A DNA stretch of 64,000 nt from Adineta vaga (GCA_021613535.1 CP075496.1:14880001-14944000); one strand, 5' to 3'. Positions 12,362 through 58,658 are shown, counted from the first letter of the stretch. The notes: a model not told the origin generated them from the letters alone. Program-made: numbers and translations.

Positions 12362-15300
12362 ATGAATTCTCTCGAACCAATTGCACTTGTTGGTATTTCA
12401 TGTGAATTTGCTGGAGACATTCATTCACCCGTCGATTTCTGGCAATCACTTCAAGAGAGTCGCGATTTAAGCAGTGATGTACGTGAAGAATGTATGAATT
12501 TGAAGTCTGCTTTTCTGGCACATATGCTAAATCAAGATAATAATGGTAATTTCGAGAAAAAGTTCATTCGCCGAGGTTATTTTCTGTCTACTTCCCAATG
12601 GGACACATTTGAGCCAAGTTTCTTTGGTTTGTCTGATGGTGAAACAGGAACTATTGATCCGTGTCATCGACTTCTTATGCTCAAGTTCGTTCATCTACTT
12701 GAAGATGCTGGCTATACCATGGAAAAAATGCGAGGTTCACAAACATCAGTGCATATAGCTCAGTTCTCTGGAGATCATTCAGTTACATTATCACGACTTA
12801 AACCTGAACAGCGGTCACGATTCCATGGGCCTAATACATTACTGTATAATGCCGCGGCTCGGCTTTCATATCATTTTGACTTACGTGGCCCCAATCTATC
12901 AATGGATGTTGCTTGTTCAGGATCACTTCAGGCCTTACATCTAGCTGTACAGGCCCTGCGCGCAGGTGAAGCAGATATGGCCGTTTGTGGTGGAGTTAAT
13001 TCGGTATATACTCCTGAAAATCTTTTGCATGCTTCAATTCTTGGTGCTATGTCACCCGAGGGGAGAAGTCGATCATTTAGCGCTGATGCCAATGGCTATG
13101 CGAAAGGTAACCGAATCATTTTTCTTATCAGGAAGAGTTCGAAATTGTGGCAATTGATACTTCATTGATAAGATGACTATTTGAGTGCAGAATGTACATG
13201 TATTAGTTTACGTATTCGATCTTGATCATATTGTATAGCGTAAGAGAAGTGAAAAATCGTATGATATTTTTACTATAATCAAGTTTATGCTTGAGGCAGA
13301 GATACTCTATCGACTGAAGTCTTGTTTTAGCCGTTGCTCAGAATATTATTTAATCAGAAAGCGACTTATCAAATTGACTTTTATTTAACTTGATGCATTC
13401 TTTGATCGGATGAAGAATGTTTGAATATTCTTCTTCACTATTGATAATAATATATTCGAAACTACTTTTTGCAAGAGAAAAGTGAATAAACGTTTTGCTG
13501 GAACCTATCAAAACAACTTTTAAAATGGCTATCTAACTGTTCTATATAAATAGAACGCTTAAATATTCTTTTGTTGTCGATGAATAAGTAAATAATTTCC
13601 TTAGAAAAGAATGTAGATATTTTATGCCAGTTTTTCTTTTCATAATTCGTTTCTTAGTATACATAATTTCGAACGTACTAGCTATGTTTATTAATTTGCA
13701 GAACCGAAAAATTTTGTTTATAGAGAGAAAGTAATCCACTCCAGTATTGCCTAACATAAATAGACAAATTCTAAAACTTTTCATATATTCTCTTTTAAAA
13801 GGTGAAGGTCTGGGGCTTGTTCTTTTGAAACGATTGAGTGATGCTGAACGCGATGGTGATCGAATTTATTGTGTGATACGCGACATTCTCAGTAATCATG
13901 ATGGCTGCGACGGTAAAAATAGTTATGTTGTTCCTTCCGAATCTGGTCAACAACAGCTGCTTAACCAGGTGTATAGTCGAACTCAATATGATCCAAGTCG
14001 TATCTTCTACGTTGAAGCACATGGAACAGGAACATTAGTCGGTGATCCAATTGAAGCAAACACACTTGGACGTTTCTTTAATAGGTCTTCATTTGATCCT
14101 CCACTTCTTATTGGATCAGTCAAAAGTAATATTGGTCATACAGAAGGAACAGCCGGTGTTGCTTCTCTTATCAAAGCAGCTCTTTGTATGCGGTATCGAG
14201 CCATTCCACCTAATTTAAATTTCTCAACACTCAATCCGAAAATTGAAGCGAAACGCTATAATCTTCACGTAGTTCAGAGTATGGTGCCGTTTCCATCAGA
14301 TGATGCTGCAAGTCTAGGTCAGCCAGTAGCGCTTGGAATTAATTCATTTGGAATTGGTGGTAATAATGCACACGCCATAATTGAAGAGTACAAACAACCT
14401 AAGCGTTTAACAAATGGATATGCGAAAGCAGAAGTACAAGATTTATTACAGTATCGACAACATTTTCTTTTTGTTTTTTCAAGTAAGTTCTCATATACTT
14501 ATATAAATAGTCATCATTGTTTCATGCTGTTCTATTTTTCCTTCTATTTTTCCAATAGGCAAAAGATATGAATCACTTCAGAAACAAATAGCTCAATTTA
14601 ATGTCTGGCTACAACATGCTCTATCAAACAAGGATAGAGATGAGCATTCTTTACTCATGCGTATCTCCCAACATCTACTTCTTAAACGAACGCTCAGTTA
14701 TGAACATTTCGCTATATTCGTGTCATCTGAAAGTAAACAATTACAAGAACAGGTTGCTTCTTTTTTGGCCGAGCAACCATCAATACCTGGTCTTTTAGTT
14801 TCAAAATCTGCTTTACCGTTCAATGGTGATCGTCGTATATGTTTTGTTTTCAGCGGTCAAGGGCCTCAATGGTGGGCAATGGGACGGCAATTATATACGA
14901 CAGAACCTATTTTTCAAAAATGGATTAAGAAGATCGATGAAGAATTAATTAAGGTTAATAACAATGAATGGAGTCTTTTGCATGAATTGATTGAAAAGAA
15001 CAGTGAACATGAATCCCGTATCAATGATACAAATATTGCTCAGCCAGCCCTATTTGCTGTACAAGTTGGTCTTGCAGCTCTCCTTGTCTCGTGGCATATT
15101 TTGCCATCGGCAATTGTATCACATAGTGCTGGAGAACAAGCGGCTGCATTTGTTGCAGGTCGTATATCATTAGAAGAAGCAGTTCGTATTGTTTATCATC
15201 GATCTCGTCTTCAACATCGAAATACACGGCAAGGTGGTCGAATGTTAGCCGTGGGAATGAGTGAACAAGAAGCACGTGAACATTTACTCAATGGTGTAGA

Positions 15301-18300
15301 ACATCTTGTATGTGTTGCCGTCATCAATAGTCCTCGATCAATCACTTTGAGTGGTGAAGCTCAGAATATTAATGAAATTCAACAAATTCTTACAACTTTT
15401 CATCCAAATGTATTCAAAGCTCAATTACGTATTGAAAATGCTTTTCATTCACATCAAATGGATCGATTTGATATTGAACAAGAAATGCTCTCGATGCTTG
15501 CTGATATTCGAGGTCTTCCACTAGAAAATCGTAAACAAATGTTTGATGAAAGATGTGCACATGTTCCTATTTATTCAAGTGTTACTGGATATGAAATGAA
15601 TGAAACGACACCATTTGATGCTCGTTACTGGTGGTCAAACGTTCGACAATGTGTTCGATTTAGCGATGCCATGCAGACAATTATCAAAGATGAAGTTGCC
15701 GATACTTTCCTCGAACTCTCACCACATCCTGTCTTGGCTACATCAATTCGAGAGTGTTGTGAACTGAAAAATTATCAGGCATTGATTTTATCTACACTGA
15801 AACGAAAAGACGATGAACAAGTAACACTTCTTACAAGCCTTGCACAATTATCCCATTCATCTGTCGTATGGCATTCATATTTCTCTTCACGTTCTATTCA
15901 TTCAGACGAAAGTGATTTTGATGATGAAAAGTATTTATTTGATTCATTTCCGTTATATGAATTTAACAAGAGTACCTTCTGGTATGAATCAAAAAATTCT
16001 GTATTAGACCGACGTGCTCATCGACTTTCTGAACATCCACTTTTGGGTGTTCGCCAACTAACTCAGGAACATACATCAGCTGTATGGAGGAGTTTAATTA
16101 ATCTACAATTACCTCAATATCAATATTTACGTGATCATAAAATACAGGATGCTATTCTATTTCCAGCCACAGGTTTTATCGAACTTGCTATTGCAGCATG
16201 CCATGAATTGATTCCAAGAGTGGGTGATGAACCTTTACAACCACTTGCTTTCGAACAAGTTGAATATCTCAAAGCACTTCATCTTACAGAAAATGAGTTA
16301 ACAGAAGTATTTACTGAAATAATTGGTGTACCTATACGTGAATGGCATGTCTACAGTCGTTCATGGTCGTCATCTGCTCTTGATTGTACACGCACAGGTG
16401 GAATGGCTGGTACAGATGTCGTTGAATCATTTGTCGATAAACAAATACTCAATAAACATGCAATGCAAGAATATACTCTTCATGCTCGAGGTCGTATTGA
16501 TTTTGGTACACATCTGAATTTGTACGCAACATCGGCTATTCGACATGACCCTGAACATACGCGATTTATCGAGCAAGATATAAATCAAGTTTATGCATTT
16601 CTTTCAACCCGAGGTTATCAATATGGACCAACATTTCGTACAACTGAATCACTTAAAACATCCAAATCAGAAATCATTGCTCATAGTATATTTAAAAATG
16701 AAGAAAATGAAACCAAATATTACATGAATCCTCGAATGGCTGATGGTAGTTGTAATTCTGTCATTTCGATAGTGCCTGGTCACGATTTATATCTTCCGTC
16801 AGGTATTGGTAAAATAATCTGCTTCACTAAGACAACTGGTATTACCGATCTAATAACTCATGGTACTTTTCATTCGACTGTAGCAGGTGTTGCTTCAGAA
16901 CGATCATATTCCATCGATATGTCTGTCTTTGATGGTAGTAAAGAAACAACGAATAGCAAACCAATTTGTATCATTCAAAGTTTCAAATACGATCGTGTTC
17001 CTGGTGTGGTAACTGGCGATAAAACTGTTTTCGAAAAAGTTAACGAAATTGCGAATTTGCCTAATGCGAATTCAACTGATCATATCGATAAAATTTTTAA
17101 TGAGTATTGTTTTGAAAAGAAATGGTCACCAAAAGCAATGACCACAACTACAGCAATCAAATCTATTATCGATTCATTTCCAGCAATAAATACTTTGATT
17201 GGCGATCATAACTTGGAAGTTGAAAATGAAATAGACAAACAACTTGAAAAATCTCTTGCAGAAGTAAATGCATTAGCATCAAGCTTTGCTTTTCTTGCCA
17301 TTAAACAATTAACTAATCGAGATAACAATGATGATCAAGTGAACTCGAACAAACTCGAACAATATGTACGTAACGATGAAATTCATTATCAACGATTATT
17401 TCGTGCTTGTCTCGAATTAGCCAAGAATTGTTCAAATGATATAAACACTATTAATTCAATTCAACTCGAACGTAAACGGTTACTTACTCAGTATCCTAGT
17501 CTTCAGCCACTTCTTACTGTTCTATTTGAATGCGGTTCACGTCTTAGTCGAATTCTTACAGGTGAAGAACAACCTGAAGACTTTCTCATTCTTGATCATA
17601 CAATGAAAGAGCAAGAAATAACAGCAGCGAAAGCATTACAACAAGTTCAAAGTATTCTCATGGCTGCAAACAGTAAAACAGAAACTATATTTCGATTATT
17701 TTTGAATCATATCAAGAATAATAAATGTAATAAAGAACAAGAACCACAGCTAAGAATGGAAAATCGATTACGTATAATGTTTATTGGTGGTGGAACAAGT
17801 GACGTTGCTCTACCTCTTCTTCAACAACTTGAAGATTATATTACAAATGAAAATGAAACCATTCAGACTGAAATTGTTTACACAGATGTGACACAAGCTC
17901 TTCTAGATGAAGCTAAACAAATATTTGAACATTCACCACTACTGAAAGCAAATAAACAACGTTTTTCTTTAAATTATCATCTATATGATATAGAAAATGA
18001 TAATTACATAACTAACACAATTGTTACTGAATCATTCGACATTATCTTTGCTGCTAATGTACTTCATACAACTAATGATCGAATCCAGTCATTGTCAACA
18101 TTGCGATGTCTACTTGTTCCAGGTGGTCTTCTCTTTCTTGTTGAATTAACTTGTTGTCATGCTTACTTTGATTTATTCTATGGTTTATTTGCATATTGGT
18201 GGCGAGAAAATGATCAACGTGCTCTACTTTCAATCGACCAATGGACGAAACATGTAGAATCGGCAGGTGGATTTGATCTCCCATTAACTGTTATATCAAC

Positions 18301-21300
18301 GACAAAATTGAATAATAAATTTGGTGATTCACTTCTGATTATTCAAAAAAGTCGATCACGTTCCATTCTCACTTCTCTTCCTGAATGGAAACAACAAAAT
18401 TGGTTAATACTAACCGATCAAAATCGAAAAATAGCTAGTGCACTTACTCCTTATTTGTCTTGTTCAAATCCACGAATCATAAATAATGATAATACATTTA
18501 CAATAAAAGATATTTGCCATGAAATTACGGAAATATTAACACAACATGAACAACAATTACATTTAGTTTTTGCTTGGCCACTCGATTTCACTATCGATAA
18601 TAACGATCAACAACAAGTAGCAATCAAATATCAAGAAATAGAACAATTATGTAATACTCTAATTCAAATATTACAGACGATACAAATTGCACAACCTTCT
18701 AATTATCCATTTATTTATATTTTAACAGAAAATGCTCAACAAGTAAGAACAACTACGGCAAATCCTCTTTTATCATCACTCATTGGTCTTGCACGTAGTT
18801 TAACTATTGAATGTTCCGGTAATGGTGGCCAAGGACATCGAATTAAACTTATTGACTTACAACCAGCTGATGAACGTTTTGTATCTGTATTAGCCAGACA
18901 TATGAATGAATGTCGATGGACTGATAATTTAGATGAAATTATTCTTCGCCAAGACGACAACAAAATAGAAAATGTTATTCGTCTTGAGTGGAATTATGAA
19001 ACAGTTCAAACACAAGAAAAAAATTCAAATACAGTAGAATCACAAACTTTAACTAAAACAATCGTCCCTCTTTATGATGCTGATCAAACACCATTTCGTC
19101 TGCAAGTAGCTCCATCAAGATTTCTTGCTGATCTTGTTTGGGTTCCTGATGCACCACTTCTCTCACCACCAGCTGCTCATAAGATACATATTCGTGTTCA
19201 TTGTGTGGGTCTTAATTTTCGAGATGTACTCAAAGCGTCCGGCGTCTATCCACATACACGTTTATTTGCTCAACTGGACAAGGACCAACCAGCGAACGAT
19301 CGTGATGATTGTCCGGGTATTGATTTTTCAGGCACAGTTATTCGTTGTTCACCTGATAGTCGGTTAAAATTAGGTGATCGTGTTTTTGGTTGTTGTTTAC
19401 AAGGAGCATTTCATTCTCATCTTTGTGTTGAAGAAGATGAAGTTATACGTGTTCCAAATAATTGTCATCTCACTTATGAACAATTAGCATCATTGCCGAC
19501 TGCATTCAATACAGCATTATATTCTCTCAAATATCGTGTTCATTTAGAGTCTGATCACATTGTACTTGTACATGCAGCAACAGGCTCTACTGGACAAGCA
19601 TTTATACAATATTGTCAAGCAATTGGAGCGCATGTTATTGCTACAGCAGGTACTGATGAAAAACGTCGTTTTCTGCGTGAACAATTTGGACTCGAACATG
19701 TGTTTAATAGTCGAGATCTGTCATTTGTTGCAGAAGTTGAAAAAATTGCACCTGATGGAGTCGATGTTGTTGTTAATTCTCTTACTGGTCCATTACTTCA
19801 AGCATCTGTTCAACTTCTTGCTCAACATGGTCATTTTGTTGAACTTGGAAAACGAGACATTTTCGATAAGAATACTTTATCATTATTTAATTTACGAAAA
19901 GATTGTACTTTTCACGTCATTGATTTATCTTTATTAGTTCTTGGTCGCCGAAAGAAACAATCTGTACAAATAATGAATGATTTAGAAAAATATATTTCAA
20001 GTGAACAATTTAAACCAATTGAACCAATAACAACTGTTGAACCATCAAATGTTATTGAAGCTTTTACAAAATGTAATCTTGGTAAAATGATGGGCAAAAT
20101 AATCATTCGTTTATCAAATTCCACTGAACAACTTCAAATTGAAATGAAATCACAAGAAATGCTTACAAAAGAGAACGAAGGTTAGTTCATTTACTGTAAT
20201 AATGTGATATATCTAATAAGCAATTGATTTTATTTTCACAAGAACATGTCGAGATAACTTATAAGTTGTCATCTGAATTATCTATATATACAGTGGTTTG
20301 CTAAAAGAATTGAAATACTCTCGGAGTATAAACATTGAGGGTGTGGGTGAAGGTGGGTGTATATCTTCTCCTCTTGCCCGCATTCCCATACACTCACACC
20401 CACCCACACCCACACCCACACCCACACCCTTTATACTAGTGGCATAAGCAACAGATGCTGGTCGATTATTCAATCAGTAAAAAAATTGATTAAGTTTCGT
20501 GTCAGGTATTCTAAGACGACAAACTCATAACTGTCAGCCAGACTAACATTCATTTGAAACTAGTTGAAATAGTCGTTGGTACAGGATGAACATTTGTTCC
20601 AACTATTTTTGCGAACCATCGTATATGCAGTGGCACAAAAATTTTGCCGTTTAATGCATAGCCTTTGTTTTAATCTTTTTCATACGGTCTAGCCAATAGA
20701 TCATATTACGGTATTGAAGTTTTGATCACTGAGAAGAGGTTTGAAACTACTATACAATAATTACACTCACTCATACTAGTCATAAAAACATTTTCTATAT
20801 CGAAAAATATTGCACTATGTTATCGTGAAGCTAAAAATGTGGTTCGTCAGTCCTCAATATATGAAATCACTATATGGTCACCTAATAGCGCAAGTCTCGG
20901 TTTAGCTGAATTATTCTACCAGATCATTTAATCAACTTATATCAATGAAAAACTTCGAGATATTGGTAGATCGGAAAGATTCGAATGTGAAAAGTAGAGT
21001 AAAGTTCAAGCGTAATCTATAAATTTCCTAACCACTTCGAAAAACGTCAGATTATTATCCTCTATAAAGCTCATAGAGAGTCAGCAACTTTTAATAATCA
21101 ATGTGTTTATAGAGTAACAACATTAAAAGGTCTTAATAGCTCATACTTCTATTAGAAGAATCTTGCAAAAAATCTATCGGCAATTATTTTTGCACTGTAC
21201 CGTATATTTACAACAATATAAGAAAGAAAAGGAGCAATGAATCCATAATTATTTGAATAAACAGTCGAAGAAAAAAATACACTGAGAAATGAGTTATTGA

Positions 21301-23172
21301 TAGTACAATGTCAACCATAGTATACAGAAGAAACGATCTTTTGTGCTCACCTTCTCAATATCAGTCGCTCAACAATTGATCAATCTTGTGGCAATTTGAT
21401 AAATAGTTGATAATATTTTGAATATGATAAGATTCTATAAGGAAAAATAACAATTAAAATTATCATAAAATACACGTCTAACTATTTTTATCAATTGAAT
21501 ACGATAGAAATAGCTTTCGCTTCAACATCTTGGTAAAATAACCATCCATTGTATTTGTTTAGAACATTGTATGTTTCCTTCAATTGTTTGTGATCAAGGA
21601 ACAATTTTAATTTCTGGCGGCTTTGGTGGTCTTGGTTTAACCATGTCTCGATGGATGGTAGAAGAACGAAATGTGAAGCGAATCGTTTTAATGAGTCGTC
21701 GAACATTATCAGAACTCGAACAACCAGATAATCCACAATATACACAATGGATTCAATTAAAACAAATATGTCAAACTAAGAAGAACATTGTTCATATTGA
21801 TGTTGTTCAAGTAGATGTAACTAATTTTGAAGATGTACGTGATTTAATTAAACGATTAAATCAAAGTGCATATCCTGTACGTGGTATTATTCATAGTGCT
21901 GTCGTTTCACAAGATAAACTTTTAAAAAATATTACTCCTGAAACACTCAAAATTGCAATGGATGCTAAAATTCGTGGTGCTTGGAATCTTCATCATGCAG
22001 TATGTCAAAATCAAGTACCTCTCAATTTTTTTCTCATGTTTTCATCTGTTCGAAATCATATGGTCGATTTTGGATCTGCAGGATATAACGCAGGAAATGA
22101 ATTTCTTGATGCTTTGACACATTATCGTTCTAAAATTCTTCATCAACCGACACTTTCTATTAGTTTACCTGCAATAAGTGGCGCTGGTATGTTTCATCGA
22201 GAACGAAATATATTAAGTCAGTTATATTCAAGTCATGGCTTTGAAACAGTTCCTACAGTAATCACATTTGAATTAATTGATCGACTATTTATAAATCAAC
22301 AACGAAATTCGTGTCCAATTATTTTTGCCTGCAATTGGAAAATTATGGGTGCTTCAGCTAACAAAGATCATTTGGCCACTTATCAATTAACTCAACTTGT
22401 TGCTCAACAACAAATGGCGCAAGAAAATGAGTATGATAGTTCAGCTAAGGTTCAAATAGGTATAAGAACAATGCAAGTTGACGAAGTTATTGATCGGACA
22501 CAGGCTACTGTTGCTCGTCTTCTTGGATCATCCAATGTTGAACGAATTGAAATCGAACGCTCTCTTCTTGCTCAAGGAATGGATTCATTAGCTGGTGTTT
22601 CACTGTATAATTGGTTAGGTCAATACTTTGGCATCTTTATTCCATTATCTGATATTCTTCAAGGCATTACTATTCAAAATATTGCCAAACATATACTTGA
22701 TAAATTGGAAGAACAAAAACAAACGACAACTTCTACAATATTAACAGTATCTGAGACGATATCACCAGACAATAATGATAAAGTGATATTGACAGATGAT
22801 TTATCTTCATATACAGGGATGAATAATATTATTAGTGTCATTCAACCTAAAAACAACGATAGTATCATAGTCCAACGTATCGTCTTTTGTCTCGGTGTTG
22901 CAACTACATCTCTCGATAAAATTCTACCAAAGCAGCAGTCGTTATTGTCTTCATTAATATATGTTCTATGTATTCCGAATGGTTCATCTGCAACGACTGA
23001 AACAATTGCTCAAATGCGTCGAATTCAACCTCGCGGTCCATATTCATTGATAACATTCAGTGAACAAGGAGAACATCTTGCGCATCAAATAATCAAGCAA
23101 CTCGCTGAGCAACATCAACAAGCGGGTGTTGAATATTTTTCGGCAATGGTCGATCCTATACCACTGAAATAA
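12362..23172 (+). CDS. Highly reducing iterative type I polyketide synthase (KS-AT-DH-cMT-ER-KR-ACP-degenerate TE), ~2885 aa
   Basis: Exons 12362-13106, 13802-14482, 14559-20180 and 21563-23172 join in frame through GT-AG introns (8658 nt). Motifs: KS DVACSGS/HGTGT/NIGHTE; AT GQGPQW/SHSAG/AFHS; DH HPLLG/DHKIQDAILFP; MT FIGGGT/ANVLH/LVPGG; ER GLNFRD/LVHAATG; KR GGFGGLG/YNAGN; ACP GMDSL. Confidence 0.95.
20291..20621. mobile_element. Tc1/mariner-type MITE in PKS intron 3
   Basis: TA-CAGTGGTTTGCTAAAAGAATTGAA...TTCCAACTATTTTTGCGAACCATCG-TA: imperfect TIRs with TA flanks. Confidence 0.6.
20336..20429. repeat. Interstitial telomere-like hexamers (TGTGGG/CCCACA)
   Basis: tgagggtgtgggtgaaggtggg followed by the opposite-orientation tract cacccacacccacacccacacccacaccc. 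Confidence 0.7.
20628..21197. mobile_element. Second Tc1/mariner-type MITE in PKS intron 3
   Basis: CAGTGGCACAAAAATTTTGCCG...CGGCAATTATTTTTGCACTG-TA. Confidence 0.6.
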
Positions 23173-24399
23173 TCACCACAAAACGAATTAAGAAACACTA
23201 TAATCATAAACAGACATAAAATGGGAATTAACCATGTTATAGATGTGAATTCGTTTTCACAACCAATGCTATTCCTTCTTTATCTAGTATTTGTGATGTC
23301 CTTCATTACAAAATTTATTTAATAAAAACTTGAAAATCAGTCCACTTAGCTTAAGAAACGTTTTCAGTGCAATCTCTGTTGGATTAAAAATGTCAAACAC
23401 GATAAATCGAGGTATATTATACAGCATATATGACTCGTTCGGTTAAGCGGCTATTTTGACCTTTAGCACTTTATAGATCATTGCCTATAGTAGAAAAGCG
23501 AGGCCGCTACGATGTTGATAACAGTCTTTGATAGCTAGTTAGCTAACCAAAACATTGACAGAAGTAAGTTATTTCTGATTAAATAGTTAATTAATTAATC
23601 AAATCTCGATCACAGTATATAAGTGGGCCATAGAGTCTATGGTGACTATCCTACACATGAACTATGAGAGGAGGCAAAGAAAGAGTCGTTGAGTTGGTCG
23701 GTACCTTGACGGGGGGAGGGGAGGGAAGGGATAGTCACTATTGAGTCTATTTCTACAGATCGTTCGATGATAGTTTTAGACAAAGTCATCGGTTAGTCAT
23801 TAGTTGTCAGAGGGGCGAGTGGATCCAAATTTTTACCCTTAAATACTTCAACACTATCTTTTAGTTCGTATTTCACAAAAGAATTAAGTGTCAATCAATA
23901 TGTATATAAGTAGATGCGTCATCGTGAAAGATCAAAATATGTGTTACAGAAGTTTCTTCTATAAATTTCGAAGAAACCTGCAGAAATATTAAGGGACAAC
24001 AAGATACTAAAAATATTAGCCTTCTTACATGACTCTTGAGCTACGTCATTTCAATAGTATAGATACTCATTTTGTATTACAATTTATCTACTGTAACAAC
24101 ACATCATATAATGTTCAACCAAGTTATAACGCATAACTCCTTTTTAAACAGCAACTTATTTTTATTTCTTATGTCTTAATAATCACATTACATTCAAATA
24201 TAGCTGATTGAGCACAAAAGAGAGATGCTTTTCTGTTTTTGATGTTTATACAGAGCGTAAAAAATTCTCGAGTTCGAAAGGTTTAAAAAACAATCTCAAT
24301 GACATAAATGACTGTATTTGTTAAAATATGCCCAGACCAAATTTTATTGTTAAATTGTTCTAGAAAACAACGAAAAGACATCAGAGAAACGGTTAAGAA

Positions 24400-37379: not shown

Positions 37380-38025
37380 GCTCAACGAAAAATCTTAAAC
37401 TTGTGCTTTCGACTTCTGGCAGCTCTAACTGAATAGTGTCTAGGGAAAAGGTTTGACAGAATTCTATTGAGCTGATCTAAAGAAAGTCCATCTAAATATG
37501 AATTTCCGTCATTTTTCCCTATAAATTTTTAAAACAGATTTTTACAGATCAGCTCGAGCGAATTTGCTGAAACTTTCTTTACAAAGACCTTTCACCGAAT
37601 GCTATCTAAAAGTGGTAAAAAAATTTTGGAATCTTCAGTAGAACGGTGTCGAATATTTGTTTTGTGTAACAGCTCGTGTCAACTGTTCGAAGTGTTATTG
37701 GGAAATCAGACTAGCATAGCGAAATAAATCCGGAATTCTGAGTGGACCATATTCTTTCACCTGTCAGCGAATAAAGCTGATGATAAAGGAGCGATGACTG
37801 TGGATATAATAACACAGCATACCGCCTAACTTTTGAGGACCTGTTTGGTAAAAAAATTCGTTCTCAGAGCGGGAGTATCTTCGTCAGAAAATGTGAGACG
37901 AAGCTAAACGTTTGCTTTTATAGCTAAAAAATTGTGCTCTCCAAGGCTGTATGTGTTCCACACGAAACTGAGAACTAATCGAGCGGCCCCCTATGGAAAT
38001 CGGCTGTGGTTCTCGTACAGTGGAT
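37380..38025. repeat. Old dispersed repeat family (other copies ~39655-40130 direct, ~48750-49390 inverted, fragments ~8690-9060)
   Basis: Shared blocks gagcgaatttg..caaagacctttca, cgtcaactgtt, attctgagtgg..attcttt, ctcgt(a/g)cagtgg. Confidence 0.7.
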
Positions 38026-44130: not shown

Positions 44131-44132
44131 CA

Positions 44133-46980: not shown

Positions 46981-47118
46981 TTCGGCTACCCATTACTAGC
47001 GTCAAAATGGAGAATGAGCGAAACTATTAAAATCAAACCAACGGTCATACGGATATGGCGTGACTATAGTTGTTAATGTATTATTTAAAAGAATAATCTA
47101 TTTAGACAAAAATATGCA

Positions 47119-50100
47119 ATGACTGATAAGGAATATCTGTTAAACACGTTCTCGAAACTCTCCACAAGCAATGATGATGACGATCATGACAAAGAAAACG
47201 ATAAACAAGTCTTATCGAACAGGTATGCATGAATGAGTGCTGTGAAAAATTAATGATTGTTGTTATTCTAAATGTTCTAGTCTCTCCGATTGGCGTCAAT
47301 GTTTCGATGTACTGCGGAATCGACGAAAATATGACCAACTGGATGATAATGATGAGACAGTTGATGCTGACAAGAATTCTTCTGTGGGACTTACCAAATT
47401 AGTAAGCATCTTTAAAACAGAGAACATACACCGAAAACAGTTTCAGAGTTTTTCCTAAGAGGAAAATAATAGAATCTGGAAGCCATGAGTTCCCTATAAT
47501 TCTAGGATTCAAAAGTGAAAAAATCCGATTCTCTATGTCCGTCTTTCCCAGATTGTCACTGACATAGGTCCGAGTACATTAGATGCAAATTCTTAGAAAC
47601 CATCACAGATCGTTAGCAATAATTTAATTAATTTTATAATTAGCTATGACAAACCCTCACTGACCAAGGCCGACACTAGTGATTCTTACTGATATATTAG
47701 AGTGCGACTGAAGTTGTATCAAGGAGAAAAAGCGATACTTCAGTACCCCACAAAAATTTTGGACTACGATGGAGCGCAGTGAAATAAAGATCAAAGTATG
47801 AATAGAGTAAGGTGAAGTATAGGTAGATGATTATTAAAATAGAGAATCGTATTAAAAGTTATCGCTTTATAATTGACTGTGTCTGATGACGACTAAAGAC
47901 TATTAAACGGCTTAATAGACATAATGGTAAAGAAAATCAAACATAATTAATTGGAAAACTGTAAATATCCGTTTTACTATGTGCAGAGCTGCGCCGTGTG
48001 ACACATTTTTAATTTCACATGAACTGCGATAATATATTTTCTCCCCGATAACTTTTATATAAACCAATCTCAATATTATTCTAGTTTGGTTTCGGCAATA
48101 AGTTTGATTATTTCCTGATGTTTCTCGGCGGATGTTTCAACATAGCAAATGTGTCTTGTATTATGGCTAGCTACGTTTTTCTCGGTGAACTTGCTGGAAT
48201 GTTTGCAACTCAATCATTCGCTGTCGATTGCCAATCTCAACAAGACAATTTCATTACTAACTTCAGCAATCATAGTAGATGTCCACATGGTATTGACATC
48301 AGTCCATCGAATTACGATCAATTACAAAGGTAGACCATTATTGAGAAATATGTTATCATTTTTCGTCTCTTGTTTTGTACATTGCAGATTTTGTCATCTA
48401 AATGAGACGAATTTTACGACAACAGTAAGAATAGCACCAATATCGCTTTCGTTTCGAGGACAAGTGATGGACAAAATTTACTGGTTAACGAGTAAGTCAG
48501 TGAGCTAAAATCATTGAATTAAGACACGGTTGAGAATGTAACTCCATTTTCTTTCTTGGATCATGTAGTTATTGGTTTTATTTCATGGTTATGCTGCTCG
48601 CTGGATATAATAATGTGGTCGACATCAGTGAAACGACAGACATCACGTATGAATATCGTACTCTTTCGATCACTGATTCAACGTGTAAGTGGAATTTCCT
48701 TTTTTCCAATCCATACTTTGTTTTCTTATCGGAGTATATTAAGAATCTATGAACCACTGAGACGCCTAAGCACCAGAGAGGGCTGCTCAATTAGATTCTC
48801 AATTTCGTTTGGGACATATTAATTTTATACAGCACATTATTTTAGGTATAAAACCTACTTTTCCGCTTTGCCACATGTACTCAGGTGAAGATGTTCACAT
48901 TCTGAAACAAGTTTTTCAACAAACAAATATTTGAAAGTCAGACGGTAACTTTTTTTTGGGTATTTGTAAATTCATCATTTCTTCATGGTCAGTTCTATTC
49001 GTCGCAAGTCAAAGAATGCGATCCGCTCACAATCTCTGACCTATTCTCAGTGTTCGCGGACTTCGCCAATAACATCGAGAACAGCTGACACGAGTCACTA
49101 CACAAAACTCATATCTGATCCTGTTATATTGAAGATTCCGAATTCCATTTGTCACTATTAGATAACCTTCATTGAAAAGTTTTCGCAGAAATAGATTCAA
49201 CAAATTCGCCCGAGCTGATCTGCGGAAAATCTATTTTAAAATGTATAGAACTGAGTGATGTCAATCCATATTTAAGTGGGCTTTCTTCAAGTCAGCTCGA
49301 TGGAATTCGGTCAAACGTCTCCTCTAAAGACTATTTACTTAGGCTTATCAGAAGAAGATACCAGAAGTTTAGGATTTCTTATTCACCAGGACCAGTCGTC
49401 GCTCTCATGGAGAAATCCATAAGATACGAAAAAAAATAATAGTCCATGCATATTCAAATATTCACGTACGCGTGGAAATATCAGAATCATTGTGCATACA
49501 ATAGTTGTAAGAGAGGAAGCTAATCAAATAACCTTTTATTTTTTGAGTAAAATAAAATTTAGATAGAGTATTCCCAAAATAAAATAAAGAAGAATCTGGT
49601 TTCTATACCACACGTAGTAATTCGTAGTTACAAGAATGATCCTACTTTACTAGGACATAATCACAATTGGAAACTTTTTTTACTCCTATGAAAAAATCTA
49701 TTCGTTCGGCTAGTTTTCTCGGATCTAAACGAAAAATTAGTAATTATCATTAATGTAAGAGCAAAAGGAAATCGAATAGAAAAGTTTTCTTTTATTATGA
49801 AACGTTTCAACAACTGCGATTGTATTAATCAGCGAAAAATAAAAAGAAGTTATATGCAAAAGAATATATACAAATTGAAAACAACATTAATTATCATAAC
49901 ATCTCGTAATAAAACAAATATTTTCTATTCAGTTTTCTCTTCTTTTCCTTTGGTTATTAGATGTATTGAAGGAACTAAAACAAACAATAGTTATATGCCA
50001 GGAATTATCACACGGTGATATCACCGATTCTTGTTAACTACATATTAGAGCAATAAAAGGAACATCAGCGAAAGAGAAACGGAAAAAACGATGACCTTTA

Positions 50101-53100
50101 TGGGCCTCAAACCCACACCTTCTGCTTATCCGCGCAGATGTCCTAGGTCAGTTAGACTAGAAGAACCGTCTTAATCTCAAGTTTACCGTCGAGTGATTCA
50201 TTACAGATGCTAACAATTCTCCATCACAAAATTCTCAGTTTGTTTTCTTTTGTACGCGGAATAGTAGAGCTTTCTTTATTGATCAATTCGAGAAAAAAGC
50301 GTTGACGGTTTTTTCTAGAAACAACTAAGATACCGTCAAAATATTGACAAATCAAAAACTACAAAAGTTACATTTTTGGACATCTGCTGAGGAAATTTCT
50401 TTTTCTTTTTCGTACCTTCAGACAAACGTATTTTTTTCATTTATAATGGCGATATATAGTACATCTGTCTCGATGCCATAGAGTACATGAAATAACGACT
50501 TGAAATAGTGTCATGTGGGAACGATTTTTTGTGGTTCTTGTTCCCCTTCCCATAGTTCCCAAAGAGTTTCCTAAAGCTCCATTTATCTCTGAAAACATGT
50601 CATTAGTATATATGTTGACTAGTTTTTCGCGACATCGCGTTTTATACGTAAACATCTATTATTATCAGGAAAATTATCTCTATCATGAATTCACGAAATA
50701 AAACAAACGGCAAAATATTAGCACATGAAATAATCTACCCCTTTGCATAATAGAAGCTTTCGAGGATTTATGAACTGTATAGCGTTCAGAACTTTTTCGA
50801 GAAAACTCTTTGCTATGTTCTATGATTTTTAAAAATTTATTAGATACCAAACTTTTCCAGAACTATTTAGAAGATTCTCAGACTTTTTACACTGTTTTTA
50901 AAGTTTGCAAAAGAGTTTTCGAGATTTCAAGACAGTTATCTAAGATTTCAAAAAAAAATTATTTTAATCCTTTAAGAATGAGTTCTTTTTCTGTATCTTT
51001 CATCATAAATCAATCAACGTTTCTATTTTCTAAAAGAACTTTATAAAAACGTGTGTTCATGTAGAACATCGTCTAACATGTCCCTATATAGAGAGCAACG
51101 ATTCTATATTATGAAGTTTTTTCTCTGAAAGTCAGTTTTGTTATATTTATTATCCATTACTGCATATCTGAATAAAATAACCTAATTACAATCCAAATTA
51201 TACCGAAAGACTCTCTGATAAATGCTGTAACAAAAACTAATCTCATATAGGAATCTGTGTGTTTTGAAATACCAGAGAATCGCCAGGGCCTCTTAAGGGG
51301 CCAACCGTCCCCAAAGGGTTAAAAGTGCTTATATCATTTAATTTGCTGGCTCTAGAAAGCCCTATATTCAATTTCTCAAATAAGTTTGAAAATCTTTCGA
51401 AAATTGCGTTACAAGATTTTGAACGGTATTGGCTATGCACATAAGTAAAACCATACGGTTAAATACCAGTAGAACTTCATCTGACAAGCTTAAAAATTAT
51501 ATAAGACATCTACTCTAACAGAAGAAAAGAATCATCTAGCACAGAGCTGCCGATAAGCCACTTTTTCTCTGGACTAGTCTGGTCTCACTCAAACTGCGAA
51601 ACAGGAAAGAGTAGACTGCTTGCTTTCTTAGCTTAGCCTGAGCAGAAGAAGAGGTGCCTGCAAGACAATACGTGTGATCGATAGCGCTATTCAGCATGTG
51701 AACATTGTCTGATAATCACCGAGCATATTCTATTAAACTCCATCACAATCTATGAATATTAAACTCTAACAATTTTCGATCTCCCTGTTTTGTGAAACAC
51801 GAACTGAAAGAGTATTGAAATGACTAAGGGTAAAAATTTGGAACCACTATCCATCCCCGCAGACAATTGCAGACAGCTCTTGACAGGCTCAACATTTGTT
51901 TCTCATACAGACCGGTATCCATAAACTCTATGGTCTATTTATTTACTGCGACGAACTTGACGATTAGCTAATTGAGCAATCAAGTATCAACGATTCTTGT
52001 GGTCATTTCAACTAGCTACTAAAGACCATGGAAAAAGTGATGGTGTAACCAAGAAGAATAACAGCGTTTTGTCTGTTTTCTCAGTTACGATATAGTTCTC
52101 AGCAGGACTAACCTGTATCTCATGTAGCATGCTAACAAGTGCACAATTATCAGGAGACAAACATAAGACTTTTTCGATCAATCAAATCGATGAGCAATAT
52201 TCGCAAAAGAAAAATAGTTCATCCGTAGATTCCAAGGTTTTAAAGATTCTATAAGAGTTCAATAGATTCTAAAGGATTTAATAATATTTAACTTTTCAGA
52301 ATCACATACTTCTCGAACGGATTTGGATGATCCTAAGTGATTATGAAAGATTCTATGAGATTAAATCGATTCTAACTGATTCTACAGATGTTTACGTGAT
52401 TCCAAGGTCATAGAATCAGCTGTTTCACTCTTTAATATTGAAATCTTTTCTGTCATGATTGTAGGAATAATCGTGCTCAATGTATCTTGAAAAAAAATTA
52501 GTATAAATGTTCAATCGATATTCTTATCGTTTAAAGTTATTGTTTAGAATATGACATACTTGGATACAAATTCACCTAGTGAACTAATTTTGAAATTATC
52601 CGAGTAAGCAAAATTGATCTTTCATATAAAAATAAGCGCTAATCATCATTCAATTGTTTAATAGTAATATATCAAAGATCGAGTCTGGCATTAGTATCGA
52701 ATTCTTAACATTTATTACGGCTGTGTTCAGTATAGCCGCCAGTGTAATCATCTCGTTCGTTATTAACTGGAAATTATCATTGATTCTTTCGTGTCTTTTG
52801 CCTATGATTGTTGGTGCTTCAGTAATCTTTTCTCGAGTAGGTAGATCATTATTCAAATTATCAAATTTTGTTACCTCGATTATTGTAGGCCATCAGCAAT
52901 GAAACAACCAATGAATTAACAAAATATGCCAGAGCTGGAAAGATTGTTCAAGAAGTATTTAGTTCACTGCGAACTGTCCATGCACTCAATGGTAGTCAAT
53001 TTGAACAAAAAAGGTAGTTGAATATGCATATCAGTGTGACTTAAGCTCTTTCTACTTAATTCGAAACTGTGTACTCAATTGTATACTGGAGTAAAATTAT

Positions 53101-56100
53101 CACTATTAATACATATATTCTCCTTTATTCTATCGAATACATTTATCAGTTGATGTTACTGCTAGTTCAAATCAAATAGCTCAACATTATTAAAAGGTTA
53201 ATGGACTGAAAAATGATAAGGAAAGTTAATAGTTATAACCGAACTTATAACTATTTTAAGTTTTCAGACAATAGTTTTAACCCACATACTGATTTAGGTA
53301 TGACAAAGAACTAGATTCAACTCACTGGAGTAGTATTCGTAAAGGTGTAGTGTTTGGTGTTTATATGGGTTGGATGGCCTTTCTGGTCTACTTAGTTTAT
53401 GCTGTTGGTTTCGTTTTTGGCGCGATTCTCATGTCATCTGCAGATCGTCATGTCGCCAGCATTAATCATATTCTGGTGGTAAGATGGCGTGAAGACAGAA
53501 CAATCGAAAACAATGCTATAACTGACGAGATTCATTTTATATAGATTGTAATGTTATATGCGCAATTTGTCCAGCTGTTCGGTCTCATTGGTCCTCTCTT
53601 TCAGTCATTTTCGGAAGGTCGAGGAGCAGCAGAACCTGTATTTCGATTGATTGAAGAGGTAAAGGCGACATAATGAAAGTCGTATGATCATAACGATATG
53701 ATTTTATTATATCAGGAACAAAATATATGTGTCAATGAATATGATGTATTGAACGAGGATAAATTCAAAGGCGAATCAGTTACGGATCTTATCGGTGATA
53801 TACAATTTCATCATGTCAGTTTAGTTTATCCATCTCGAAAAGATGCAACAGCATTGAATGATCTTAATGTGATATTTCGTGCTAATAAAACAACTGCATT
53901 GGTTGGTTCGAGTGGTTCTGGTAAATATTTGTTTTAAGCAAATATTTTAATTATTGAAATCTGATTATTTATTGTTGTCAGGAAAAAGCACATGTATTTC
54001 ACTTCTTCTTCGTTTCTATGAACCTTCATCTGGTCAAATAACTATCGATGACCGACCACTTACAGACTATGATATAAAAAAGCTTCGACAAAGTATTGGC
54101 GTTGTTAGTCAAGAACCCGTATGTTTTTTTGTTCTTCTTCTTCGGTTCTGTTTGTTTTTAATGTTGTTTTGAAATAGATTTTATTTAGTATGAGTATTTA
54201 TGAGAATATTCGTTTCGGTCAACTCAATGCAACACGTCAAGAGATCGAAGCAGCAGCTAAAGAAGCCAATGCACATAATTTCATTATGAAACTACCTGAT
54301 GTTTGTATTTATTGTTAGCGAACGTGCGTAGTATGAGTCTGAGTTCTTTAGGGATATGAAACATTGACTGGTGAACATGGTGTACAGTTAAGTGGAGGTG
54401 AAAAACAACGTATTGCCTTAGCTCGTGCATTGGTGAAACAACCTAGTATATTATTGTTGGACGAAGCAACAAGTGCTCTCGATAATGTTAGTGAGAAAAT
54501 TGTTCAAGAAGCACTTGATCGAGCATCGAAAAGTAATGTACCCTTATTCTTTTGTTATCTCTTATTTTACTGAGATGATAAAGGGAAATTCCTAATTGAT
54601 TTGTGAGCTAAATTTTTCTGTGATACACCCATGCAGCGAAGCACTTCGTGTACGACAATCAATGTCTGCTCCTCTCTCACGCATATAGTAGGAAAGTTAC
54701 AAGCTCAGAAATATGCTTTTGAAAAAAAAACAAGAAATAAACACATTTCTCTAGAAATCACATAAAAGTTTCTTTTACTTAAAATAAAGTTTCTTAATAT
54801 TCACTCTTTGAGGACCGGAGACGCATATGTGCGTTTAGATTGATTTCTTCAAAAATAAGTAAATAGAAATGAATTCAATAGTGAACACCCGTCCGTATGT
54901 ATAAATTCATATACAATGCAACAAACATATGCTATTGAACTGCGCTCTATACAAAATATGCGTACTTAGAGGTAGTTAACTAATTTTATTTTGTTATGTT
55001 TGATGCGTTATGGTTTTTAGAAGAAAATAATATGGCCTTCAAAGGGCTAACTAATAAGATGAAAATCGATAAGAGCCACTATTCATAAACTTGGTTTCGT
55101 TTAGCTTGTAACGCCTTTTTTGACAGACATCGAAAATATTTGCTATTATTACTTCAAGAATTGAACGAAACAATGTAGATATCATATGCGCAGATGTATC
55201 GGCTGTTGAAAATGTCTTGAGAATCATGAAAGAAAAAAAATAACAGGGAGGCATTTTACAAGTTTGATGAGTTAAGATGATTTTCTTAACTTAGAAAGGC
55301 AAAACAGCAGAGCAGAGAACTATGGAAGAAATAGTAGAAAATACACATGAATGTCTGGTAAAAAAGGTGTTACAAGCTAAACGAAACCAAGTTTATGAAC
55401 AGTGGCTCTTATCGATTTTCATCTTATTAGTTAATATTAAGAAACTTTATTTTAAGTAAAAGAAACTTTTATGTGATTTCTAGAGAAATGTGTTTATTTC
55501 TTGTTCTTTTTTTCAAAAGCATATTTCTGAGCTCGTAACTCTCCTACTATATGCGTGAGAGAGGAGCAGACATTGATTGTCGTACACGAAGTGCTTCGCT
55601 GCACGTTTGTGTCCCAGAAATAAATTTTCAAATAAGCATCTCAACACAGAAGAATTTATCACACAAATCGAGTTGAGATTTCTGGTACGGTCAACATATT
55701 ATCTATACTTAGATCGTACTACTATTGTCATTGCTCATCGTTTGAGCACGATTAAAAATGCTGATCATATCTATGTGCTAGACAACGGAAGATTCATTGA
55801 AGAAGGTACACATGAAACTTTGATAGCCAAAGAAGATGGTAAATATGGAACAATGATAAAAGCTCAGCAAATGACAAGAATGATTGATGAAGATCGAAAT
55901 GATCTAATGAGTACGATAACCACTACAGCTGAAGATCAAAAACAAATATGTATATAAAAGTTTAAATAAAAATTATTCAGATTTATTTCAATACTTTATC
56001 TATTGTCTAGCACAACGAACTCATGCACTGAGAGAAGGTGAACTTCTCACTACAGATCAAGTAAATATTGATGCACTAATATTAGAACTAAGAATTTCTT

Positions 56101-58658
56101 TTGCAGAAGGATACGACATCAGTCGAACAAAACAATATATTTCGAAGACTCTTAGCAATGAATAAATCCGAATGGGTTACTATCTTAGTTGGTTGTTTAG
56201 CATGTGTGTTCAATGGTTTGACCCAACCATTATTTGCAATATTATTGACTAAAATCATCAATGTAAACATCTCATCAAGTTCTATAAAACTGTTCAACAG
56301 TTAAAACTATGTCTTTTTGTATGTTTAGGCATTTAAAGATTGTGGATATGGAAATATACACTATCAAGTATTTGTGGCCAGCTTATTTTTTTTAGTCTTA
56401 GGTGTGATGGTCTTGTTCCTTTTTTTCTTTCAAGTAAGAATTCTTTTTGTCAAGAACCGAAACGATGGGAATTATATTGTTGTTCTAATTGATATTTTTC
56501 TTCCTTTCAGTTTATGGCTTTTACTATAGCAGGATCCAGATTAGTTCGACGTATTCATTCGAAAGCATTTGCATGTCTTCTCCGTCAAGAAATAGCTTAT
56601 TTTGATCGACCAGAGAACAGTTCGGGTGCTATATGTGCTCGTCTGACTGCCAATGCAACAGCTCTACAAGACATGATTGGAAATAGATTAGGTGCCATCT
56701 GTGAAGCTTTGGCTTTATCCGGTTTTGGTGTGCTATTTGGTTTTATTTTCAGTTGGCAACTCGCTCTCATGTCCGTAGTGCTGCTTATTATTCTGCTTGT
56801 GGTTAGCTCTATCAGTATATATTTGAGCACAATTATAAAAGAAAAATGCGATCGCTATCGCAGTCAAGCCAATTCAGTAGGTCTTTTTCGTGTTTGAAAC
56901 AGCTCAATATTAAAGATGCTAGTGAATGTTGTTTCTTGGTTTTAGCTTGCTATGGAAGTTATTCATAATATGCGTACGATCAAACAATTATCTGTTGAAA
57001 ATGAAGTTTTACAACAGTATACTGACTCGATTCAGCAAGTATTGAAGTATGTTTTGAAACGCAGATGCTATTTTATACATATCGAACAGAATTAATATTG
57101 ACTAAGTTTGTTTTGCTCATGTAGAACGTCTTTGAAATTCAATGTTCTGATGGCTCTGTCAACTGGTATAGTTTGGTCCATAAGTCCGTTGATAATGGCA
57201 CTTTTCTATTGGAGTGCTATTATCCTTATTGAAAATCATAAACTAGCTTCAAATGAGATGATCATGTAACGATACTCATAGTTGAACTAAACTGACAAAA
57301 AATGCTTTAATCTTTGAACTTTTCTAGGGTTTTTGCTTTTGTTATATTTACATTACAATCATTCATAATAATCGGCACACTGTAAATAAGAAAATCAGCC
57401 ATTTCGTTAGTGATTTGTGTGTTCCTGTGATTTTAGATCAGATCGTATTGGACAATCGATTTCTGCTGCACAGATCTTTTTTGATATATTCGACCGAACA
57501 CCATCGATTGATAATACATCTACCCAAGGACAAGAATTAGTAAGAGGACACTTCATTAATCGTTTGTACAATATGTTTTATCTAGAGTGATTTCCGTGGA
57601 GATATAGACTTTGATCAAGTGAAATTTGTTTATCCCACTCGACCTGCATCTGCTATTCTTAACAAATTTCAATTAAATATCAATTTTGGTAAGCAAAGCA
57701 AGAGAAATTCCCTTAAGTAGTTTTTTTAAATTTTTCTTCATTTTCCATCTTTGCTTAGGTCAACGTATCGCTCTTGTTGGTAAGTTGGAATTTATCCGAT
57801 CAATCTTTATTACAGAATATTATTCATATAGGGACATCGGGGTGTGGAAAATCGACTGTTATTCAACTATTAGAACGATTTTATGATATTACACAAGGAC
57901 AATTAGTAAGTCAGGAGATTGTCATTAAAAGCTGCTAGAATTGAACTGTTAAACATTTAGTTTCTTGATGGAGTGGATATTCGACAACTAAATGTGCAAT
58001 GGCTTCGTTCTCGTCTTGGTCTTGTTAGTCAAGAACCTGTTTTATTTGATATGACCATTGCAGAAAATATTATATATGGATTAGAAAATATTCCCATAGA
58101 AGAGATCATTAATGCTGCAAGTAAAGCTAATATTCATGAGTTTATTCAACAGTTACCACAGGTTAGGGTCTACGAAATGATATTGATAATTGTTTAATAA
58201 TGTCTAATACGATTATATACGTAGGGCTATGAGACAAGAGTTGGTGTTAAAGGTAGTTTTATGTCTGGAGGAGAAAAACAACGTATTGCTATAGCAAGAG
58301 TACTTCTTCGTCGGCCCAAAATCTTATTACTAGATGAAGCAACAAGCGCCATGGATTCATTTAACGAGCAAGTAAGTGGCTGTTCGTTTTTCTGTTGATT
58401 ACTTTATTTGTTATCTTGATTCCATCATTCGAGATTGTTCAAGAAGCACTTGATCAAGCTCAGAAAGAAGATCCAAGCCGAACATCGATTATCATTGCAC
58501 ATCGTCTGTCGACAATTCGTTCTTGTGATGCAATCTATGTACTTGATCAAGGTCAGATTGTCGAGATTGGCAATCACACTGAATTGGTGCAACAACGCGG
58601 AATATACTATAAAATGCTTCTGGCACAAAATAATCTGCAAAACTATGATACGATGTGA
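47119..58658 (+). CDS. Full-length ABCB1/MDR1 (P-glycoprotein)-like ABC exporter, ~29 exons
   Basis: Predicted start MTDKEY at 47119; VGLTKL|[12 protein letters not shown]; two TMDs. NBD1 [40 protein letters not shown]; NBD2 [33 protein letters not shown]. Exons traced in frame. Large introns 48685-52547 and 54533-55712. Confidence 0.92.
50968..51318. mobile_element. Possible piggyBac-type MITE in ABCB intron 5
   Basis: TTAA-TCCTTTAAG...CCCCAAAGGG-TTAA. Confidence 0.45.
54610..55625. mobile_element. Foldback element in ABCB intron 14
   Basis: TIR pairs 54632-54800 / 55433-55603 and 55048-55130 / 55350-55433. Confidence 0.85.
54804..55046. mobile_element. piggyBac-type MITE nested in the left TIR of the foldback
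   Basis: TTCA-CTCTTTGAGG...CCTTCAAAGGG-CTAA. The opposite TIR shows the empty site as a single TTAA. Confidence 0.7.

Follow-up and report, generated by a model that had tools for sequence, protein, structure and literature searches.

The 64-kb window analyzed here, the whole stretch of DNA between positions 14,880,001 and 14,944,000 of chromosome 4 (CP075496.1) of the bdelloid rotifer Adineta vaga Av20, lies 280-345 kb from the chromosome end. Pfam searches, tblastn, and inspection of motifs, with spliced models queried one exon at a time, revealed three genes in it that look intact: a spliced gene for a highly reducing polyketide synthase (PKS), a gene for a nonribosomal peptide synthetase (NRPS), and a gene for a full ABCB (P-glycoprotein-type) transporter. 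The same three genes, in what was thought to be a bdelloid host, had been proposed as a biosynthetic gene cluster in an initial annotation made from the DNA alone, and both genes and host are borne out, as is the convergent arrangement of the PKS and NRPS genes, whose stops at 23172 and 24400 lie 1.2 kb apart. The largest PKS open reading frame (ORF) is 100% identical to the A. vaga protein I4U23_021842 (P0121). The features of the three genes, in window coordinates and with the evidence for each in brackets, are as follows.

12362..23172, plus strand: highly reducing type I PKS gene, four exons (Pfam; tblastn of P0121 and bdelloid homologs; catalytic motifs)
13108..13801, plus strand: PKS intron 1, about 694 nt, GT..AG, within the KS domain (sequence; the 100% P0121 tblastn match splits here)
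about 14488-14560, plus strand: PKS intron 2 (tblastn of the NCBI model and bdelloid homologs)
20181..21562, plus strand: PKS intron 3, 1382 nt, GT..AG, between ER and KR (sequence, frame, run X4 contig)
21563..23172, plus strand: PKS last exon, with KR, ACP (GMDSL), and a 146-aa C-terminal stub (Pfam KR and PP-binding; blastp of the stub)
23173..24399, no strand: 1.2-kb spacer between the convergent PKS and NRPS 3' ends (ORF ends)
24400..36197, minus strand: NRPS gene, about 11 predicted exons (Pfam, NCBIfam, tblastn of bdelloid homologs, splice-site search)
34589..36197, minus strand: NRPS exon 1, the C0 condensation domain, ATG at 36197, motif HHIAFDL (Pfam; P0241 100% over 537 aa)
33462..34588, minus strand: predicted C0-C1 intron, 1127 nt, phase 1 in a Gly codon, just 5' of ASYAQVRIW (sequence; chromosome 5 paralog; Adineta steineri models)
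31746..33461, minus strand: C1 condensation domain, two exons, motif HQACFDF with the second His lost (Pfam; motif; junctions)
32834-32897, minus strand: 64-nt intron of C1 (junctions)
29939..31745, minus strand: module 1 adenylation domain and carrier T1 (GGHS), introns of 56, 59, and 59 nt (Pfam; translations; junctions)
28221..29884, minus strand: C2 condensation domain, motif HHSAFDG (Pfam; motif)
26422..28220, minus strand: module 2 adenylation domain and carrier T2 (GGTS) (Pfam; blastn of the two modules)
24400..26421, minus strand: C-terminal Pls/PosA-like domain (TIGR02353, hydropathy, AlphaFold2 (AF2) model, fold matches)
24631-24687, minus strand: 57-nt in-frame intron, GTAATA...TTTTTTTCTACAG, in the 999-codon tail ORF (sequence)
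47119..58658, plus strand: full ABCB (P-glycoprotein-type) transporter gene, more than 20 exons (Pfam on exons; exon translations; start exon of a paralog; PDB matches)

The PKS and NRPS genes are already known as a unit, Cluster 4.3 of Nowell et al. (2024, Nat Commun 15:5787, PMC11258130). Their ORF pieces correspond, coordinate for coordinate, to "region4.3 / Cluster 4.3" (Chrom_4 14884446..14930947) in Supplementary Data 9 of that work, and the listed coding sequences from 14892362..14893168 to 14914584..14916197 equal the window ORFs from 12362..13168 to 34584..36197. About 40 clusters were catalogued in Av20, with defects in 10 of the 40; the entry for Cluster 4.3 reads intact, 6272 aa, NRPS_term and AdoMet, three-domain set, and no defect (PMC11258130). 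The entry gives no strand, and co-translation was generally assumed, whereas we find that the PKS and the NRPS are encoded by two convergent genes. Our models of the same DNA are also more refined, with RNA-like support for the 1382-nt intron, a C0-C1 junction, an HQ variant in C1, and a thioesterase (TE) stub. The published region ends at window position 50947, within a large ABCB intron, and the ABCB gene is absent from the entry. The same paper nevertheless already describes a metazoan ABCB1 that flanks a cluster and is co-expressed with it (PMC11258130), so that neither the cluster nor this idea is new. With one PKS and a two-module NRPS, about 6,300 aa in total, Cluster 4.3 is smaller than any other member of the bdelloid PKS-NRPS family that looks intact.

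The PKS gene was recovered as four plus-strand ORF pieces, which encode, respectively, KS; KS_C; AT-DH-methyltransferase-ER; and KR-ACP. Pfam matches (KS, KS_C, AT, DH, methyltransferase, ER, KR, and ACP) give the order KS-AT-DH-cMT-ER-KR-ACP, where cMT is the C-methyltransferase, followed by a truncated TE-like stub. Both the domain set and the catalytic residues are those of a type I highly reducing PKS: the KS carries DVACSGS, HGTGT, and GHTE (the Cys-His-His triad), the AT SHSAG, the DH HKIQDAILFP, the KR YNAGN, and the ACP GMDSL. Each catalytic residue is either kept or is a variant common to all bdelloid homologs compared (SHSAG is found in the AT of all of them).

Intron 3 separates the ER and KR exons. 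Removal of the stretch between GT and AG at 20181/21562 leaves the reading frame intact, and the homologs continue directly from ER into KR at this point. A public 741-nt contig from run X4 links positions 20065-20178 to 21561-22187, omitting exactly 1382 nt with GT..AG ends; it spans the ER exon and the KR-ACP exon and so places all PKS domains on one transcript. Contigs from runs X4 and X5, which come from one sample, lie on exons only, those of the NRPS tail (24772-25422) included. Neither run has a recorded type, and "RNA" is deduced from this exon-only pattern. The RNA-like contigs extend to 23271 and restart at 24772. Contigs from X6 and X1 include intron 3 and are DNA-like. The NCBI model I4U23_021842 stops at an in-frame TAG (20183-20185), three bases into intron 3. 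Because this TAG lies in an intron that is spliced out, the NCBI model is truncated and lacks KR and ACP; splicing of the 1382-nt intron is reported here for the first time.

The last 146 aa of the PKS gave no Pfam match at E values up to 10. In blastp searches this stub aligned solely with the N-terminal half of the TE domain of TE-bearing bdelloid PKSs, the GYSFGG motif being replaced by TFSEQG. The protein ends about 30 aa after TFSEQG, before the region of the TE catalytic Asp and His, and the same end point is seen in the PKS homologs P0126, P0125, P0131, and P0145. Since the TE stub is truncated, has lost GYSFGG, and lacks the Asp/His half, the PKS has no working release domain, either TE or R, in agreement with what had been proposed for it.

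The NRPS has the domain order C0-C1-A1-T1-C2-A2-T2, followed by the Pls/PosA-like membrane domain. Pfam detected three C domains, two A domains, two peptidyl carrier proteins, and hexapeptide repeats in it, and, as judged by homolog tblastn and splice-site searches, the exons are mostly separated by introns of 54-64 nt. The first domain is a C domain with HHxxxD kept (HHIAFD), as expected from the initial annotation; C2 likewise carries HHSAFD, and C1 has HQACFD. The adenylation and carrier domains have AMP-binding, AMP-binding_C, and PP-binding matches and the motifs TSGSTGVPK, NGKVDRK (with the A10 Lys), GGHS, and GGTS. The DNA of the two A domains (26746-28376 vs 30267-31901) is 99.4% identical over 480 nt and 91.4% identical over 768 nt, introns included, while about 390 nt between the shared blocks, including the substrate-pocket region, cannot be aligned. 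The pattern points to a module that was duplicated recently or to gene conversion, with the pocket spared.

C0 is annotated by NCBI as a separate protein of 537 aa. The 1.1 kb that follow it are non-coding in all three frames. The C0 ORF ends in G|GTTAGT, and an acceptor at 33463-33462 restores the frame just ahead of the C1 motif ASYAQVRIW; the first exon of C1 has no ATG of its own. In the chromosome 5 paralog, a 62-nt phase-1 intron interrupts the same Gly codon, and the A. steineri models P0242 and P0243 each unite C0 and C1 in one protein. Because the donor and acceptor restore the frame, C1 lacks an ATG, and the chromosome 5 intron and the A. steineri models agree, the gap is read as an intron, and C0 and C1 are predicted to form one gene, joined across an intron that the paralog has at the same position and in the same phase. 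The NCBI models of A. vaga break at the long introns (20181-21562 and 33462-34588). The chromosome 5 C0 (I4U23_022096, 525 aa) is likewise split off in the NCBI models, despite an intron of just 62 nt.

The tail of the NRPS, about 670 aa long, comprises three transmembrane helix pairs and three left-handed beta-helices, so that the membrane-embedded end of the enzyme, noted at the outset, was seen again both by hydropathy and by AF2 modeling. Hydropathy peaks at residues 330-379, 528-601, and 795-859 of the ORF. The AF2 model (pLDDT 86.8, pTM 0.87) contains three repeats of a helix hairpin and a beta-helix, i.e., six predicted transmembrane helices in three pairs with three intervening left-handed beta-helix segments, as in Pls/PosA, and the architecture fits the described C-terminal domain of PosA/Pls (PMC10522769). 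The 57-nt intron corresponds to a low-confidence helix that breaks the third beta-helix in the model. Fold matches of the tail were to left-handed beta-helix acyltransferases only, none at an E value of 0.001 or better, and by sequence the tail gave only weak left-handed beta-helix matches in PDB. Pls/PosA synthetases likewise have an A-T pair followed by a tail of three transmembrane hairpins and three left-handed beta-helices. The characterized ones, however, are single-module A-T-Cterm enzymes that polymerize diamino acids (PMC10522769), whereas here the arrangement is C-C-A-T-C-A-T-Cterm and the tail closes a multimodular, PKS-primed line. Three bdelloid NRPS models with the same tail (P0070, P0078, and P0080, from A. 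steineri, Rotaria socialis, and Adineta ricciae) contain a PABS domain (PF01564, spermidine-synthase-like), and this co-occurrence hints at a polyamine link of the terminal domain.

Linkage of the PKS and the NRPS was examined in the A. vaga assembly (six contigs, 100.8 Mb), which was used for own-genome searches. DNA and protein searches revealed at least six paralogous clusters (6 of the 9 best C0-type paralogs) in which a PKS KR-ACP is followed on its own strand, after 1-3.6 kb, by a C0-type domain; these lie at C5:0.68 Mb, C3:19.93 Mb, C3:0.33 Mb, C6:13.60 Mb, C6:13.75 Mb, and C3:1.57 Mb, where C denotes the chromosome. When pieces of the window genes were mapped onto two paralogous loci, the order was KS...ACP, C0, C1, A-T, C. 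The PKS of the chromosome 5 cluster ends at a stop of its own, C0 there begins with its own ATG, and many clusters of the family end in the tail domain. From the order at these loci, the chromosome 5 stop and ATG, and the position of the tail, the family order can be read as a stand-alone PKS followed by an NRPS of the form C0-C1-(A-T-C)n-A-T-tail, of which Cluster 4.3 is the shortest form, with the PKS inverted. A hand-off from PKS to NRPS is well supported by these comparisons, because in no fewer than six of the paralogous clusters a C0-type domain follows the PKS directly.

The closest paralog of C0 (43%) is the C0 of the g48151 cluster, the chromosome 5 paralog of the window genes (Chr5:665120..721107; PMC11258130). 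The two clusters belong to the same family and share the order PKS, C0-C1-A-T-C..., tail. The g48151 cluster is co-directional, much larger (a 21.5-kb coding sequence model), and pathogen-induced, whereas Cluster 4.3 has two modules, an inverted PKS, and the HQ variant in C1 and is probably not induced.

Outside A. vaga, the Rotaria locus L003 has a PKS alone, the A. steineri locus L013 is scrambled, and the 10 kb downstream on the environmental contig L012 are free of PKS and ABCB genes. No non-self homolog of the PKS or of the NRPS tail exceeds about 50-58% identity. P0126, the closest PKS of A. ricciae, which adjoins a tail-NRPS in tandem, was considered as an ortholog of the Cluster 4.3 PKS and rejected, because its best A. 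vaga match is at C3:16.50 Mb (62%, vs 50% for the present locus). That locus (C3:16504126-16507498; 62-67% to P0126) has an in-frame TGA and may be a degraded copy.

Together, these observations point to Cluster 4.3, the smallest member of a horizontally acquired bdelloid cluster family, as what is probably a two-enzyme pathway running from PKS to NRPS. The PKS would assemble a reduced, possibly C-methylated acyl chain on its ACP and, because its thioesterase is a truncated stub, would be unable to release this chain itself. Transfer of the chain would occur in trans, to the C0 domain at the N-terminus of an NRPS translated separately, and C0 would N-acylate the amino acid on T1. C2 would then add a second amino acid, and release of the acyl-dipeptide would fall to the membrane-embedded tail, with an amine at the membrane as the most likely acceptor. 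In such a scheme, the inversion and convergence of the PKS gene are immaterial, since the PKS and the NRPS are two separate proteins. The hand-off, the release chemistry, and the product are what we infer; a structure prediction for the complex of C0 with the ACP-stub scored 0.00, which is evidence neither way.

Bacterial lipopeptide NRPSs with a starter C domain and fungal PKS-NRPS hybrids share with Cluster 4.3 an N-terminal C domain with no A-T pair before it, positioned to receive an acyl chain, and a reducing, cMT-bearing PKS as the source of that chain. Cluster 4.3 differs from these systems in that its PKS and NRPS are separate proteins, its N-terminal C domains are in tandem, release is proposed to occur by a membrane-embedded left-handed beta-helix domain rather than by a TE, R, or DKC domain, and the host is an animal, with spliceosomal introns in the genes.

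Several observations weigh against a working two-enzyme pathway. C1 has HQxxxD (at 32950-33000) where every paralogous C1 examined, on chromosomes 5 and 3, and the A. steineri homologs have HHxxxD, a difference that the initial annotation does not mention, and one condensation step may be impaired by this change. The two-enzyme scheme does not account for two tandem C domains at the N-terminus. The A5 core motif of A2, NMYGVAE, is atypical. The C0|C1 splice is a prediction from sequence and homologs. The NCBIfam model TIGR02353 (Pls/PosA) matches the tail in three stretches with 160.1 bits, below its cut-off of 423.1. No 1:1 ortholog of Cluster 4.3 was found in the other species examined. Expression is very low: the same-species runs guessed to be RNA hold almost none of the window. 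PKS and NRPS contigs do occur in the same sample (X4 and X5), and contigs carry no expression levels. Finally, only g48151 and g23567, out of 60 A. vaga NRPS/PKS models, were induced by a fungal pathogen (PMC11258130). The former maps to Chr5:665120..721107 and the latter is intronless, and both are located elsewhere than Cluster 4.3; because these are the only two induced models and neither maps here, Cluster 4.3 is, by inference, not pathogen-induced.

The third gene of the window encodes a full transporter with the order TMD1-NBD1-TMD2-NBD2 (TMD, transmembrane domain; NBD, nucleotide-binding domain) and, in each half, a Walker A, a Walker B, a signature, and an H-loop motif. The NBD motifs are GSSGSGKST, LSGGEKQR, and AHRLST in the first half and GTSGCGKST, MSGGEKQR, and AHRLST in the second. 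The start codon at 47119 (MTDKE...) lies about 5.5 kb upstream of the first clearly recognizable ABC exon and 10.9 kb from the NRPS start, and both this start and the exons for TM1 and TM2 at 48.1-48.7 kb are kept in a chromosome 2 paralog. Large introns are present at about 48.7-52.5 kb (3.8 kb) and 54.6-55.7 kb. The best PDB matches of the TMD2 exon were to residues 772-875 of ABCB4/ABCB1, and the full-transporter architecture, the NBD motifs, and the best structure matches are all shared with animal ABCB1/ABCB4 P-glycoproteins; compared with these, the signatures here are LSGGEKQR and MSGGEKQR, and the A. vaga genome has about 20 ABCB-like loci, this gene included. Its many introns and animal-type matches fit a native metazoan P-glycoprotein paralog. 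ABCB1-like flanking copies in A. ricciae were likewise called metazoan (PMC11258130). Another ABCB-like exon, 53% identical to the TMD2 exon, lies upstream of the window at C4:14824457-14824840, about 8.5 kb outside the published region 4.2.

Whether the transporter belongs to the cluster is a separate matter. A three-gene cluster, in which the ABCB protein would be a co-regulated, dedicated exporter of, or self-protection pump against, the PKS-NRPS product, is in our view a doubtful proposition, though one that retains some chance. The ABCB gene is intact and is separated by its 10.9-kb distance from the NRPS start, with only repeats between. The A. ricciae ortholog and paralogs of the induced g48151 are flanked by ABCB1-like and MFS (and P450) genes, of which the ABCB1-like and MFS genes are co-expressed and the former are co-upregulated with the synthase genes (PMC11258130). 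In A. vaga, 3 of 20 ABCB-like matches fall within 60 kb of a C-domain locus, compared with 2.4% expected genome-wide (P about 0.012). Against this, the P value rises to about 0.08 when subtelomeric ABCB matches alone are considered; the nearness of ABCB genes and clusters does not go beyond a shared subtelomeric enrichment, and the ABCB link is weak. Moreover, the closest ABCB paralog, on chromosome 2 (72-82% DNA identity, collinear from 1.7 kb upstream of the gene to just past its stop), is free of PKS and NRPS genes over the 40 kb retrieved with it, the nearest C-domain match being 61 kb away. Collinearity with chromosome 2 ends at the ABCB gene, short of the synthases. Most paralogous clusters have no ABCB gene within 60 kb, and no ABCB match was found near the paralogous clusters checked on chromosomes 5, 3, and 6. 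Because the chromosome 2 paralog lacks an adjacent synthase and the proximity P is about 0.08, membership of the ABCB gene is no more than a possibility, and the current evidence favors a bystander. The view of the three genes as complementary parts is thus strengthened by the paralogs for the PKS and the NRPS, which recur together with C0 downstream of KR-ACP in at least six of them, and is not supported for the transporter as a member.

It is also conceivable, though we consider it unlikely, that Cluster 4.3 is a decaying relic, with trace transcription and a product that is no longer made. This would account for the loss in C1 of the second His of HHxxxD, which the paralogs keep, for the inversion of the PKS relative to the family order, for introns that have grown to 0.7-1.4 kb and transposable element fragments around the genes, and for very low expression with probably no pathogen induction. 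A relic would not be expected, however, to have about 19 kb of coding sequence with no frameshift or premature stop, to keep all other catalytic motifs, and to splice its long PKS intron correctly, nor does it agree with the "intact" score given to the cluster by Nowell et al., who recorded defects in 10 of 40 (PMC11258130).

A more specific version of the two-enzyme pathway, combining all parts of the locus, appears quite improbable as a whole. It would be a working minimal animal pathway in which the PKS hands its chain in trans to the C0-C1 didomain, the Pls/PosA-type domain joins the acyl-dipeptide, at the membrane, to an amine, either an amino acid or a polyamine, and the adjacent P-glycoprotein removes the product. 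To our knowledge, the Pls/PosA-type membrane domain has so far been seen only in single-module homopolymer synthetases. If the combined scheme were true, it would add a new release logic to those known for hybrid assembly lines, and Cluster 4.3 would be the smallest bdelloid defence cluster that is tractable. That the PKS and the NRPS are mere neighbors with independent products, as their being separate, convergent genes might suggest, is very unlikely given a PKS with no working release domain, the absence of a loading module before the first NRPS C domain, and the PKS-then-C0 order in at least six paralogous clusters.

In the remainder of the window, the other ORFs of at least 70 aa gave no Pfam match, and the window gave no Rfam match. 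As had been noted initially, there is no phosphopantetheinyl transferase gene within the 64 kb; two such loci (PF01648) are present elsewhere in the genome, on chromosomes 2 (C2:8.65 Mb) and 5. The intergenic space holds dispersed repeats and a long interspersed element (LINE) endonuclease fragment, and two features were delineated.

38216..39440, no strand: 534-bp inverted repeat in the NRPS-ABCB spacer, arms 38216-38750 and 38907-39440, 99% identical and about 157 bp apart (own-genome DNA search)
42550..44037, minus strand: fragment of a non-long-terminal-repeat retrotransposon (APE-type endonuclease ORF), not biosynthetic (homologs with PF03372 and PF14529)

The LINE fragment has a 92% copy at C5:60046-61352, which sits in the published cluster region 5.1 (21856..69474), and copies of 71-73% elsewhere. 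A repeat of about 630 bp occurs three times in the window, at 37350-37974, 39623-40130, and 48783-49409; the last copy is in the large ABCB intron, and another is found in an intron of the chromosome 2 ABCB paralog. A 69-bp tandem repeat (4.1 copies, 98% matches) is located at 1885-2165. Comparison of five long introns (two of the PKS gene, one of the NRPS gene, and two of the ABCB gene) revealed no shared sequence.

As a discovery, the locus adds little, both the cluster and the idea of a flanking ABCB1 having been published in 2024, and in these subtelomeric regions adjacency of an ABCB gene is, by itself, no evidence of cluster membership. Its practical value lies in its being the smallest apparently intact member of the family, now with corrected gene models in which KR-ACP is restored to the PKS and C0 is rejoined to the NRPS. 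For the bdelloid family as a whole, the order of PKS followed by C0-C1...tail provides a concrete, testable hypothesis of how the acyl chain may be handed off and the product released.

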